Sequence record: OQ790161.1
DNA: 64,000 nucleotides
Reading direction: 5' to 3' (one strand)
Part shown: piece by piece, positions 5,397-62,769 of the stretch
Numbering within the stretch: position 1 is the first letter of the stretch
Layout: every line of letters starts with the position of its first letter
Program-made: the position numbers and the translations under genes
Notes under the pieces: generated by a model
Told to the model about the DNA's origin: nothing
The model's input: only the letters and a program-made list of their open reading frames with translations
The model's database searches: none

Positions 5397-5436
5397 GGCA
5401 TAAGAGCCAGGACCCTTCGGGGTCCTGGCCAATGCT
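5397..5436. terminator. Bidirectional hairpin between convergent genes (GGCATAAG flank)
   Basis: ggcataaga-gccaggaccc-ttcg-gggtcctggc-caatgc. Confidence 0.75.
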
Positions 5437-20158: not shown

Positions 20159-20189
20159 CAGCCAGCCCCTTCGGGGGCTGGCCTTATGC
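20152..20189. terminator. Bidirectional hairpin, GGCATAA...TTATGC family
   Basis: ggcataaca-gccagcccc-ttcg-ggggctggc-cttatgc. Confidence 0.75.
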
Positions 20190-22285: not shown

Positions 22286-22323
22286 GACATAAGCCCCCGC
22301 CTCGAAAGGCGGGGGCAGTATGC
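22286..22323. terminator. Hairpin, CATAAG...TATG family
   Basis: gacataag-cccccgcct-cgaa-aggcggggg-cagtatg. Confidence 0.7.
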
Positions 22324-27812: not shown

Positions 27813-27846
27813 ACTCCCCCCACCCTTCGGGGTGGGGGCATATGCC
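27813..27846 (+). terminator. Hairpin, UUCG loop, TATGCC flank
   Basis: cccccaccc-ttcg-gggtggggg-catatgcc. Confidence 0.7.
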
Positions 27847-38841: not shown

Positions 38842-38882
38842 GGCATATTGCGAGGGGTCCTTCGGGACCCCTCGCTTATGTC
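38842..38882 (+). terminator. Hairpin, GGCATA...TTATG family
   Basis: ggcatatt-gcgaggggtcc-ttcg-ggacccctcgc-ttatgtc. Confidence 0.75.
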
Positions 38883-40292: not shown

Positions 40293-40315
40293 GGCGGACC
40301 TTCGGGTCCGCCTTT
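40293..40315 (+). terminator. Hairpin, UUCG loop
   Basis: ggcggacc-ttcg-ggtccgcc-ttt. Confidence 0.7.
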
Positions 40316-47728: not shown

Positions 47729-47762
47729 CATACACCCCCTGCCCTTCGGGGCAGGGGTTTTG
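47729..47762 (+). terminator. Hairpin, UUCG loop, T-tail
   Basis: cataca-cccctgccc-ttcg-gggcagggg-tttt. Confidence 0.75.
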
Positions 47763-53341: not shown

Positions 53342-53379
53342 GGCATAAGCCCCCGCCCTTCGGGGCGGGGGGTCTATGT
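53342..53379. terminator. Bidirectional hairpin, GGCATAAG family
   Basis: ggcataag-cccccgccc-ttcg-gggcggggg-gtctatg. Confidence 0.75.
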
Positions 53380-56155: not shown

Positions 56156-56962
56156 ATGTTTTCGAGTTTGCAAGTGATGTACCTCAAACAAGTGGCCAAG
56201 AAGTACGCCGCTGTTTTGTTGGGTGTGGCCCTGATCTTCATCGCCTGGTCCAACCATTTCGTGTATGGCGAGAAGGGCCTGATCGGCGCTGCCGCCCTGC
56301 TGATCGTACTGTGTTGTTTCCAGTACGAAGCACTGCGTTCGGACTGGGCCGAAAAGCGCCGCCTCAAGAACGAGCTCAATGAACTGCGGACCGACCATAC
56401 CAAGTTGTCCCGTGAGTTCGATGAGCTGCACACCGACTATGTCTCCCAGACGGCCGATCTGGAAAGGGAGCAACGATTGCACGAGGCCGCCCGGACGGGG
56501 TACCGCGCCGCGTTGGACAGCGCCAATCTGTTCCTGCCTCGCATCGTGGATCTGCGCCGTCAGCGCCTGCTCCTGCTGACGCTGCTGGTTCGCGCCTTCC
56601 CCTCGGGCATTCGTGCCGAGACGTTCATCCAGGAATGGGAAGTCGATCGCAGTGTGGGCATCAGCGCTACTGCCCCGCCGGTGAAAGAGCCGAAGAAGAC
56701 TTCGGATTACTTCGAGCAGTCGAATCTGGTCCCGTACCTGTACATCACCTTGCCCAATGGCGAACAGATGCGCATTCCCCTGAACGAGGAAGAAGTACGA
56801 CAGCTGCGCAGCCTGCCCGATCCGGTGGGTGACTACACCGGCGTGCGAAACGTGCTGCTGGAGACGTTGTCCTTCGACAACTTCGCCAAGTTGCTGGAAA
56901 CCCATCCGGAAGTCCAGCTGGCCCTGATGATCAAGGTCCACGAACGCGAGAGTGCCGCCTAA
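56156..56962 (+). CDS. Membrane protein (2 N-terminal TM helices plus coiled coil)
   Basis: YAAVLLGVALIFIAW and LIGAAALLIVLCCF followed by heptad repeats. Confidence 0.7.
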   Translation: MFSSLQVMYLKQVAKKYAAVLLGVALIFIAWSNHFVYGEKGLIGAAALLIVLCCFQYEALRSDWAEKRRLKNELNELRTDHTKLSREFDELHTDYVSQTADLEREQRLHEAARTGYRAALDSANLFLPRIVDLRRQRLLLLTLLVRAFPSGIRAETFIQEWEVDRSVGISATAPPVKEPKKTSDYFEQSNLVPYLYITLPNGEQMRIPLNEEEVRQLRSLPDPVGDYTGVRNVLLETLSFDNFAKLLETHPEVQLALMIKVHERESAA

Positions 56963-57234
56963 TGGCCGAGGAATATATCGGCGGGGTCACTGAAGACCGA
57001 CGTGCCACGGACTTCAAGTCCGAGGAAGAACGCCTGACGGATCGGTACGGCAGCGGGATGACCCGCTCGCTGGCAGCGACCTACGGCTGCATGATGGCAG
57101 GTATCGGTCTGGAGTTGTTGAAGGTTCCCTATGCCTTGCCCGTCAGTGGTGTGCTGACTGTGATCTCGTTCATCTACCTGTGCTACTACAGCTCGAAGAT
57201 GAACAAGTTGATGCAGGCCACAAAGAAAGACTAA
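56962..57234 (+). CDS. Small 2-TM protein, holin candidate
   Basis: Two hydrophobic helices and a basic C-tail; directly upstream of the endolysin. Confidence 0.45.
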   Translation: MAEEYIGGVTEDRRATDFKSEEERLTDRYGSGMTRSLAATYGCMMAGIGLELLKVPYALPVSGVLTVISFIYLCYYSSKMNKLMQATKKD

Positions 57235-57268
57235 GACATACCCCCACCTTCGGGTGGGGGTTTATGCC
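57235..57268 (+). terminator. Hairpin, CATA...TTATGCC family
   Basis: gacata-cccccacc-ttcg-ggtggggg-tttatgcc. Confidence 0.75.
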
Positions 57269-57303
57269 CATCCTATGACGTTTTGTCCAATAGGAGAAGT
57301 GGC

Positions 57304-58119
57304 ATGTTGCTGCGTTTGAACGACCGCGGTGATGCGGTCAAAGACCTGCAGACCAAACTCGGTCTGAAGGCTGACGGGCACTTTGGCCCGCTCACCCAAA
57401 CCGCCGTGATCGCCTTCCAGAAGAAGGTCGGTCTGCCGGCAGACGGCATCGTGGGTCCTGCCACGTTTGCCAAACTCGGTGTCAAGGAAGAAGTTGTTGT
57501 GTCGAGCCGTGCGCTCACCAAGGATGACTTCATCAACGCAGGTAAGCTGCTCAACTGCCATCCGGGTATGATCGAAGCGCTGGCCCTGAAGGAAACCCGT
57601 GGCAAGGCGTTCCTCCCCGATGGTCGCCCGGCCATCCTGTTCGAACGCCACCAGTTCTACAAGCGCCTGCCGATCGTGCGTAAGGCCGGACAGACCCAAG
57701 CCTCACTGCTGGCCATTCGCGAGCAAGCCGTCAAGAACGATGGTGACATCTGTTCGTCGGTGCGCGGCGGCTATAAGGGCGGTGCGGCTGAATACGACCG
57801 GCTGGCTCGTGCCCAGAAGTACTCCGACACCGCTGCACTGGAAGCAGCCAGCTGGGGTCAGTTCCAGGTCATGGGCTTCAACGCGGTTGCCATCGGCTAC
57901 CCGAGCGTGCAGGAGTTCGTGCGTCTGATGTATCAGGGCATCGATCAGCACCTGATCGCGCTGGTGCGTTTCATCCAAGCCACCCCGAAGGCACTCAAGG
58001 GCATCCGTGAGCAGAACTTCGCGATGCTGGCGGGTGCCTACAACGGCCCGGCTTATGCCGAGAACAAGTACGACACCGATCTGAAGAAGCTGTTCGACCA
58101 GGTCAAAGGTAAGTACTAA
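57304..58119 (+). CDS. Modular endolysin: PG_binding_1 plus N-acetylmuramidase (DUF3380)
   Basis: L.LNDRGDAVKDLQ..LG...DG.FGP.T..AV.AFQ...GL.ADGIVGP.T; ETRG..FLPDGRPAILFERH.F; ASWGQFQVMGFN; FA.AYNGPAY..N.YD. Confidence 0.9.
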   Translation: MLLRLNDRGDAVKDLQTKLGLKADGHFGPLTQTAVIAFQKKVGLPADGIVGPATFAKLGVKEEVVVSSRALTKDDFINAGKLLNCHPGMIEALALKETRGKAFLPDGRPAILFERHQFYKRLPIVRKAGQTQASLLAIREQAVKNDGDICSSVRGGYKGGAAEYDRLARAQKYSDTAALEAASWGQFQVMGFNAVAIGYPSVQEFVRLMYQGIDQHLIALVRFIQATPKALKGIREQNFAMLAGAYNGPAYAENKYDTDLKKLFDQVKGKY

Positions 58120-58793
58120 TGGCGCAGGTCACCGTATCGATGGAGAAGTTGCTGTGGCACGGTCAGCGAGATCTCCATTGGGTGCATAAGGCGATCGTGC
58201 GTTCGCTGGAAATGATCCTCGATGTGCGCTCGCTCACCTTCGACCGCAGTGATGTCAACTTCAAGGTGGTGGAGGAGATGATCCTCAACCACTCGGAGCA
58301 TCTGAAGATCATCGGAGAGTGGATTGGCCATCCCAACTACGACTTCGGCCCCAAACTGTGGGAAGCCCAGCGGGCACTGTTGCCGTATTTGAATGGATGG
58401 AAGCACCCGACCTTCTACCGTGGTTTCGATACCGGAGCCGGGCAGTCGCACATGGGACTGCAGTTTGCGCGAGGCTGGTTTGGCGCCAAGCCGCATGACC
58501 TGAAAGTGGGAGACAAGTTCTCCTACGTGGCCGATCACCCCTTGTCCTTCAGTCACGTTCAAGGCGTGGCCGAATCATTCGGTAAGATCATCGTGAAGGT
58601 CAGTGGGCGCAAGCAGTACCATCGCATGTTGCCTCTGACGCCCACGTTGGTTTACGCCGTGGACCGACTGATGTATGGCAATTCGGATATTTTCAAGAAC
58701 GACAGTAGCTGGGTGACGGAGGCAGAGACGATCCTGCTGCCGTCGAAGGAGCCTGTCGAGTTTGAGGTCGTATCCGTCGGCAAGAAACGCTAG
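58119..58793 (+). CDS. Putative R-S-E class ADP-ribosyltransferase, probably virion-packaged
   Basis: FYRG (Arg), LSFS....VAESFG (STS-like), EAETILLP...FEVVSV (E-x-E); N-terminal VSME cleavage motif. Confidence 0.55.
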   Translation: MAQVTVSMEKLLWHGQRDLHWVHKAIVRSLEMILDVRSLTFDRSDVNFKVVEEMILNHSEHLKIIGEWIGHPNYDFGPKLWEAQRALLPYLNGWKHPTFYRGFDTGAGQSHMGLQFARGWFGAKPHDLKVGDKFSYVADHPLSFSHVQGVAESFGKIIVKVSGRKQYHRMLPLTPTLVYAVDRLMYGNSDIFKNDSSWVTEAETILLPSKEPVEFEVVSVGKKR

Positions 58794-58801
58794 CCACAAG
58801 T

Positions 58802-58831
58802 GCCCCCACCCTTCGGGGTGGGGGTTATGCC
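58802..58831 (+). terminator. Hairpin, TTATGCC flank
   Basis: gcccccaccc-ttcg-gggtggggg-ttatgcc. Confidence 0.75.
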
Positions 58832-59227: not shown

Positions 59228-59836
59228 ATGGCCGGCTTCTGGGATTACCGAGGTCGGCGTTTCATTGCCATTGTGGGAAGTCGTGAAGCTCCTGAGGAGG
59301 CGTTGTCCGTTACTCGGGAACTAGGACGTGCAGTGACTGATCGAGGCGTTGCCGTCTCTAGCGGTGATGCTGATGGGATGGACTTGGCAGGATACGAAGG
59401 TGCACTGACCTCCCCTGCCTTTGAGCAGATCGGAGCGCGCATCTTTCTCCACAAGTCCCCAGTCCACTACAAGACTCGCCCACCACGCTACGCCGATGAA
59501 CGCATCTTCTTTGATGCCTCTCAGTTCTACAACTGGGAACAGGCACGTCAGTACGCCTTCGACGCCCGTGGTTCGTTCGAAGGACTGTACGACAATGGGA
59601 TTGCCTTGCACTCCCGCAATGCGTATCAGATCTTGCTTGATGATCTTCAAACGCCAGTCAGCTCTGTGGTTTACTGGGCACGTCCCGTCGGGAAGAAAGG
59701 GCAGGTCAAAGGCGGCACCAACACCGCTGTACAACTAGCCCGTCGATTCAACGTACCCCAGATCAACATCTACACCGATGAGGGCATGGAGAAGGTCTTG
59801 AATTACATCAAAAGGAGTCGAGAGATCCATGTGTGA
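59228..59836 (+). CDS. Stand-alone SLOG-superfamily (DprA/Smf-like Rossmann) protein
   Basis: IAIVGSREAP, VSSGDADGMD.AGYEGA, HSRNAYQIL, GGT.TAV.LARRFNVPQINI. Confidence 0.8.
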   Translation: MAGFWDYRGRRFIAIVGSREAPEEALSVTRELGRAVTDRGVAVSSGDADGMDLAGYEGALTSPAFEQIGARIFLHKSPVHYKTRPPRYADERIFFDASQFYNWEQARQYAFDARGSFEGLYDNGIALHSRNAYQILLDDLQTPVSSVVYWARPVGKKGQVKGGTNTAVQLARRFNVPQINIYTDEGMEKVLNYIKRSREIHV

Positions 59837-62731: not shown

Positions 62732-62769
62732 GGCATACAGCCCCTGCCTTCGGGCAGGGGCTTTCTTTT
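62732..62769 (+). terminator. Hairpin with T-tail, GGCATA flank
   Basis: ggcatac-agcccctgcc-ttcg-ggcaggggct-ttctttt. Confidence 0.8.

Follow-up and report, generated by a model that had tools for sequence, protein, structure and literature searches.

What does the small protein encoded directly behind the endolysin of Xanthomonas phage RTH11 do, and where in the infection cycle does it act? The window analysed here comprises bases 1-64000 of the RTH11 record (OQ790161.1; genome 312,199 bp), so that window and record coordinates coincide, and an original prediction made from the letters of this window alone had proposed that the gene at 58119..58793 (Table 1) encodes a virion-delivered ADP-ribosyltransferase (ART) analogous to Alt of phage T4. 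The open reading frame (ORF) lies at the coordinates then given and contains no stops or frameshifts; it had, however, been taken for unannotated, whereas GenBank already holds the product as WJJ54938.1, labelled 'hypothetical protein' and thus lacking a functional name. As set out below, conservation and modelling make it very probable that the protein is a functional ART with a core resembling that of T4 ModB and ModA, and analogy with relatives makes it reasonably likely that it is packaged and injected.

A literature search retrieved no paper on RTH11. Among the genes of the phage are seven split ones labelled 'RNA polymerase beta subunit', together with those for an internal head protein, a tubulin and a head maturation protease of the Peptidase_S80 family (Pfam 4.4e-80; record 262298..263089), on which grounds it is a phiKZ-like jumbo phage, as originally proposed, and very probably forms a nucleus. 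The GC content at third codon positions of the ART gene (0.76) equals that of the adjoining endolysin gene (0.754) and the gene therefore looks native to the RTH11 genome.

Catalytic motifs and conservation of the family

The original prediction had named three internal motifs, FYRG, LSFS and EAE, together with an N-terminal S-x-E, and all four were located at the positions it gave (Table 1). In order to count conservation we used 129 domain instances from representatives at <=50% identity, drawn from a family for which a word-indexed search gave 5 close relatives (36-90% identity) and an exhaustive profile search 127 representative homologues at E <=1e-3; few further members, none of them named, came from running the family profile in a word-indexed protein search. 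The arginine R101 is present in 128/128 instances, flanked by an aromatic residue at position 100 (127/129) and by G102 (125/129). S143 is kept in 122/127 instances and position 145 is serine or threonine in 123/127, whilst E203, the candidate catalytic glutamate, is found in all 123 of 123. As bare patterns such motifs could arise by chance, but these three are the best conserved positions in the whole family alignment. The alignment shows the signature by which cholera-toxin-like (R-S-E) ARTs are recognised, R / S-x-S/T / [Q/E]-x-E, and the motif positions are under strong purifying selection.

Relationship to ModB, ModA, Alt and DraT

Profile comparison places the family beside the T4 enzymes ModB and ModA (T4 ModA, ModB and Alt sequences were taken from NC_000866). 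Using hhalign, the family matched ModB alone with 84.9% probability (E 6.5e-6) and an alignment of ModB/ModA relatives with 95.3% (E 2e-8, 79 columns), whilst the comparison with ModA alone was not significant. At a relaxed threshold the ModB/ModA alignment is collinear over 167 columns and sets R101, S143 and E201/E203 on the Arg, Ser and E-x-E of ModB, with low confidence at the C-terminal end; within it FYRGF pairs with Y-R-G of ModB and LSFS with S-F-T-T. The RTH11 protein thus resembles ModB and ModA in being a single-domain phage enzyme of the R-S-E clade, of ~200-224 aa, with collinear aromatic-R-G, S-x-T/S and E-x-E motifs, although identity between them and the RTH11 family is only ~18-23% over aligned columns. 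The Pfam family of ModB/ModA, PF26816, is known here from a precomputed label; the Pfam set searched assigns no family even to ModB itself. The RTH11 protein differs from the T4 pair in context: ModA and ModB are early, non-packaged proteins of a phage dependent on the host RNA polymerase, whereas RTH11 has polymerases of its own, the RTH11 gene is coupled to the endolysin, a homologue was found in virions and the protein has a protease-type N-terminal leader.

Kinship with Alt, in contrast, does not extend to sequence. The Pfam model PF03496 (ADPrib_exo_Tox), which T4 Alt itself matches at 5.8e-36, gave no match to the RTH11 protein or to 56 relatives, and hhalign of the family against T4 Alt returned a probability of 0.1, ruling out membership of the Alt family by sequence. 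As the sequence is ModB/ModA-like rather than Alt-like, the 'T4 Alt analogue' of the original prediction could hold for the delivery route only: an ART in the head that the prohead protease would shorten and that would be injected together with the DNA. Alt is annotated as 'present in T4 capsid and enters the host with the infecting DNA' (NC_000866). With 682 aa and a large N-terminal region it is a much longer protein than that of RTH11, whilst the fold neighbours of the RTH11 model belong to the structural group of Alt (VIP2-C3).

The sole Pfam family matched repeatedly by relatives is DRAT (PF07357), hit weakly by 11/56 (best E 1.8e-4, all below the gathering score); every other Pfam family was matched by at most one of the 56, the RTH11 protein itself had no match, and a rescan of ten short relatives against Pfam gave one marginal DRAT match only. 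DraT is an Arg-specific R-S-E enzyme, but the RTH11 gene has neither a DraG partner nor a nitrogen-fixation context. Profile searches of the PDB gave a single weak top match, 2kxi_A ('Uncharacterized protein'; E 1.4, then 0.044), covering the Y-R-G and S-T-T motifs; we take this entry to be the NarE ART of Neisseria meningitidis, an unconfirmed identification to which we give no weight.

Predicted structure

Two AlphaFold2 models were obtained, one from a 56-sequence alignment (predicted local distance difference test score (pLDDT) 85.4, predicted template modelling score (pTM) 0.79) and one from a 109-sequence alignment (pLDDT 88.1, pTM 0.84). Both comprise a four-helix N-terminal part followed by a beta core, on which the three motifs occupy the predicted strands and loop listed in Table 1, in the canonical order; pLDDT falls below 50 at residues 1-16 of the first model and 1-7 of the second. 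A Foldseek comparison, which the original prediction had named as a check, recovered mostly R-S-E ARTs, VIP2 and C3 included, each of them a statistically weak match: such enzymes make up ~40 of the first 50 matches in the PDB for model 1 and the first 16 for model 2. Among them are ExoS/ExoT, CDTa, iota Ia, VIP2, C3 exoenzymes, Plx2a, C3larvin, Certhrax and C2-I, and further the Listeria ART-ARH toxin, HopF-type and XopAI effectors and ART2.2. Against the predicted viral structures of BFVD the family itself came first (RP12 at 1e-16), followed by named phage ARTs from E 8.6e-4 and weaker. Near-invariant motifs, canonical strand order, R-S-E fold matches and profile homology to ModB/ModA together strongly support the original assignment of the protein as an ART.

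Evidence for delivery with the virion

Four independent hints point to delivery in the virion: detection of a homologue in the virions of phage RP31, a motif conserved at the end of the leader, the genomic company of some relatives, and polyvalent-type domain architectures. Ralstonia phage RP31, which is phiKZ-related, encodes the homologue ORF124 (BAW19387.1; 27% identity, E 3e-12), one of the 32 proteins detected in purified RP31 virions using liquid chromatography-tandem mass spectrometry, where it is described as 'Unknown' and listed with a theoretical mass of 24.5 kDa, an observed mass of 25 kDa and 2 unique peptides (PMC5468394 Table S3). Its computed mass is 24.49 kDa.

The first nine residues of the RTH11 protein are a candidate propeptide and capsid-targeting leader that a prohead protease may cut. 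The S-x-E noted at the N-terminus by the original prediction takes the form V-S-M-E (Table 1). Leaders in the 30 long family members range from 8 to 80 residues, and 28 of the 30, RP31 ORF124 (G-L-E17) included, have [S/G/A/T]-x-E aligned at the leader's end, in most cases with a hydrophobic residue in front of it. The short relatives of ~180 aa have no leader, and in them S/G/A/T-x-E occurs at chance frequency only. In phages of this group the SPN3US protease cuts after A-X-E, with V preferred at P4, and the phiKZ protease after S-X-E (PMC10052503, PMC5694885). V-S-M-E9 fits the phiKZ-type motif, and RTH11 has the S80 protease gene. Leaders of small size have precedents: SPN3US has short N-terminal propeptides of 20-24 aa, and T4 has capsid-targeting sequences of 10-20 aa (PMC10052503, PMC5694885).

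As to genomic company, relatives lie in phiKZ-like genomes. One from a metagenome has head-tail-joining genes on one side and a major capsid gene of phiKZ type on the other, and the gene of another sits beside an S80 protease. The eight cultured phages with a family member are all jumbo phages (265-312 kb), and in each the protein is labelled 'hypothetical'. The same ART domain occurs, moreover, inside multidomain proteins of 480-2,160 aa (P0022, P0049, P0075, P0106, P0107, P0109, P0118, P0129), accompanied by DUF5662, GNAT, HD, transglutaminase-like, ParB-like nuclease, SNF2/ResIII helicase and SUKH domains. In having this ART domain family inside giant proteins they are like the phage polyvalent proteins (Iyer et al. 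2017 and 2022), which are predicted to be embedded in the virion and injected and whose most frequent modifying domains are ARTs (PMC9503650). The RTH11 ART differs in standing alone as a single domain, and the Pfam ART-PolyVal model was not among the matches. The paper describing phage BONAISHI, another carrier of the family, contains no virion proteome.

The homologue in RP31 virions, the conserved leader motif and the S80 protease render the delivery proposed by the original prediction plausible; by analogy, packaging and injection of the RTH11 protein seem fairly probable. For the mechanism as a whole, the evidence leans slightly towards a small, catalytically competent R-S-E mono-ADP-ribosyltransferase with a ModB/ModA-like core that is packaged in the head, trimmed and injected. 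In such a scheme the ART would be made together with the endolysin and enter the prohead, where the Peptidase S80 prohead protease would remove the 9-residue leader after V-S-M-E9. The ART would then be ejected alongside the DNA and the virion RNA polymerase and, at a very early stage of infection at which no phage nucleus has yet formed, would use host NAD+ (nicotinamide adenine dinucleotide) to ADP-ribosylate one or more host macromolecules; in the RTH11 clade the target would probably be an arginine of a host protein.

A number of observations weigh against this scheme. On the side of enzyme identity, direct sequence searches with the RTH11 protein gave zero matches in Pfam, NCBIfam and PDB sequences, and it matches PHROG 29772 (function unknown) only. 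The Foldseek matches in the PDB have best E values of 8.2e-3 and 5.7e-3 and template modelling scores <=0.38, such that none is individually significant, and the E-x-E motif is not conserved across the family, which counts against arginine specificity. On the side of delivery, the RP31 detection comprises those two peptides only, in a list that includes possible contaminants; of characterised proteins the closest are ModA and ModB, neither of which is packaged; and the RTH11 gene lies among nucleotide-metabolism and lysis genes, away from the head genes. The 9-residue leader is shorter than every documented phiKZ-type propeptide. The conserved Glu9 could be, perhaps, just the first structural residue of the domain.

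Several of these points would also be expected of an active ART that is not packaged, being made in the infected cell and modifying host or phage proteins in the manner of ModA and ModB, with the small-x-Glu marking the start of the domain. Homology of the profile to ModB/ModA and not to Alt, the position of the gene in its nucleotide-metabolism and lysis block and the two-peptide RP31 detection all favour this possibility. We nevertheless regard it as rather unlikely, given that a homologue was seen in RP31 virions at all, that a protease-type motif is kept at the end of leaders of variable length in a region predicted to be disordered, that one relative is found among head-tail and capsid genes and that the domain recurs in polyvalent-type proteins.

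Acceptor specificity and possible targets

E-x-E is usually tied to Arg-specific transferases, as the original prediction had noted. The E-A-E is indeed present in the RTH11 clade, but the motif is not family-wide: position 201 is Q in 72 instances, Y in 15, E in 13 and L in 9. Glutamate at this position is limited to the RTH11 clade and one further relative (P0012), and most relatives have Q-x-E; amongst the long relatives many have Y/F-x-E, RP31 ORF124 has F-G-E and BONAISHI Q-x-E. Arginine specificity of the RTH11 ART is accordingly a weak inference from sequence, whilst the diversity at position 201 suggests that targets or acceptor specificity differ between lineages.

That same variability two residues before the catalytic glutamate is what might be expected if the ART fold served another chemistry, as an NAD+ glycohydrolase or as a transferase modifying DNA or RNA. 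Within the R-S-E clade, enzymes with Q-x-E include some that act on residues other than Arg and some that target DNA, which likewise speaks for such a function. So does the nearest relative of known activity, ModB, in that NAD-capped RNA is among the groups it transfers (PMC9503650). The E-x-E of the RTH11 clade, as a general rule usual in Arg-specific transferases, and a sequence without sign of nucleic-acid binding argue the other way, and we judge a different chemistry to be improbable.

For a protein ADP-ribosyltransferase delivered at the onset of infection, an Alt-style retuning of the host RNA polymerase would not be required, because phiKZ-like phages bring their own RNA polymerases, and for the same reason host shut-off or the neutralising of early defences would be likelier than redirection of the host enzyme. 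Some polymerase-encoding jumbo phages have ART homologues that may interface with host transcription (PMC13282480, a 2026 review). RTH11 also carries a gene for a NAMPT-type nicotinamide phosphoribosyltransferase (record 70519-71907, outside the window, L008:519-1907; PF04095 6e-62 and PF18127), so that NAD+ salvage stands beside an NAD+-consuming ART in this phage, and it has a gene for an NAD-dependent DNA ligase.

Implications for phiKZ-like phages

Phage ARTs, head-packaged ones included, are an already known theme, as T4 Alt and the polyvalent proteins illustrate. ARTs are found in >40% of jumbo phages (PMC9503650) and are commonest in jumbo phages without an RNA polymerase of their own (PMC7824862). 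The RTH11-type ART sits in polymerase-encoding, nucleus-forming phages with no need to retune the host RNA polymerase, and what is added here is an unlabelled family tied to phiKZ-like phages, together with the proteomic support that RP31 gives and the conservation of a leader of protease type. We tentatively propose, as a possibility that we hold at somewhat less than even chances, that an unnamed family of small ModB-like ARTs is a recurrent capsid cargo of nucleus-forming phiKZ-like phages, with a variable propeptide removed by the S80 protease, delivery in the first seconds, while the DNA still lacks the protection of the phage nucleus, and a specificity-determining residue at position -2 from the catalytic glutamate (E, Q, Y or F) that has diversified between phage lineages. 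If this is true, the diversified specificity residue would fit an arms race with differing host targets, such as early defence or the host expression machinery. If injected, the protein would be a concrete candidate for action on the host during the still unprotected opening minutes of infection, and its leader would exemplify, for the phiKZ group, short capsid-targeting sequences. The assignment also offers better annotation for phages considered for the biocontrol of Xanthomonas, Ralstonia, Erwinia and Vibrio.

Genomic neighbourhood and intergenic elements

The ART gene is the last of a packed plus-strand run consisting of a dTMP kinase, a gene of no assigned function, a DHH phosphoesterase, two small membrane proteins and the endolysin. 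At 58116-58121 the start codon of the ART gene overlaps the stop codon with which the N-acetylmuramidase endolysin gene ends, confirming the TAATG coupling originally described, and late co-expression of the two genes is plausible from this arrangement. For the endolysin itself, the ATG at 57304 used by GenBank, which has an AGGAG upstream at a fitting distance, is a more likely start than the TTG at 57283 of the ORF list. The first membrane protein (56156-56962; 268 aa) has hydrophobic segments at about residues 12-60 followed by a coiled-coil-like region, and the second (56962-57234; 90 aa), whose gene overlaps it, has a segment at about residues 53-76. Neither has a family match; from their position and segments they are candidate holin-like or lysis-control proteins.

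Adjacency of muramidase and ART is kept in the syntenic L017 and L018 (40-50% identity) and, with one inserted ORF, in L004/L005; this reflects shared ancestry within a single lineage and is no independent evidence. The inserted ORF (250 aa; L004:7243-7995 / L005:1409-2161), in a 269-kb metagenomic phage, has no family match. In RP12/RP31, BONAISHI and a Salmonella-associated phage the neighbours of the ART gene differ from those in RTH11.

It is very improbable that the protein is a non-enzymatic structural or lysis-accessory component with chance ART-like motifs, for although its gene is coupled to an endolysin downstream of two small membrane proteins and no curated family matches it, the protein has no transmembrane segment or signal-like region, its catalytic triad positions are invariant across ~129 divergent relatives, it has ART fold neighbours and ModB homology, and its gene lies apart from lysis genes in other phage lineages. 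A spanin or holin role in particular was ruled out by the lack of a membrane segment and of lysis neighbours in those lineages.

Table 1. Coordinates of the ART gene, its motifs, the endolysin gene and the intergenic hairpins in the RTH11 window.
Feature	Position	Strand	Description
ART-like gene	58119..58793	+	224 aa plus stop, ATG start, intact; WJJ54938.1
Leader codons 1-9	58119..58145	+	Predicted disordered; ends V-S-M-E (residues 6-9), then K10
F-Y-R-G-F, residues 99-103	58413..58427	+	Aromatic-Arg motif; R101 on predicted strand 98-103
L-S-F-S, residues 142-145	58542..58553	+	S-x-S/T motif; S143 on predicted strand 142-145
E-A-E, residues 201-203	58719..58727	+	ARTT-type loop between predicted strands 197-200 and 203-206
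Endolysin gene	57304..58119	+	N-acetylmuramidase PF11860 4.6e-49; PG_binding_1 PF01471 5.6e-14
Hairpin	57240..57261	+	GC-rich, 9-bp stem, TTCG loop; just upstream of endolysin gene
Hairpin	58803..58824	+	GC-rich, 9-bp stem, TTCG loop; 10 nt past ART stop
Hairpins 1-6	842-859, 5406-5429, 20161-20182, 22293-22316 (-), 27817-27838, 38850-38875
Hairpins 7-12	40293-40312, 47736-47757, 53350-53371, 57240-57261, 58803-58824, 62739-62762

The endolysin-ART pair is bracketed by two perfect 9-bp hairpins, the second of which is a terminator-like end of the pair. They belong to a set of twelve perfect GC-rich hairpins in the 64-kb window, with 7-11-bp stems and a TTCG loop, every one of them intergenic. 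GGCATAA and TTATGCC, which are complementary to each other, flank many of the hairpins, and most have no clear T-run; the twelve have the look of terminators or RNA-stability elements that form one family throughout the phage. The heptamer TACTATC is intergenic at four (1104, 5815 (+) / 5830 (-), 58854) of its five occurrences in the window, against an expectation of ~0.15, and the copy ~30 nt past the hairpin behind the ART gene may serve the gene that follows as a promoter element. No sigma-70-type promoter emerged when the sequence was scanned for them, and a scan of intergenic k-mers recovered the hairpins but no promoter assignable to a temporal class. Further downstream, the DprA-like gene at 59228-59836 probably starts at ATG 59228, giving 202 aa, and not at 59378 as in the GenBank coding sequence (59378-59836); in the long form Pfam DNA_processg_A covers residues 10-62 and a PHROG match residues 11-196, and the syntenic homologues have 194-199 aa.

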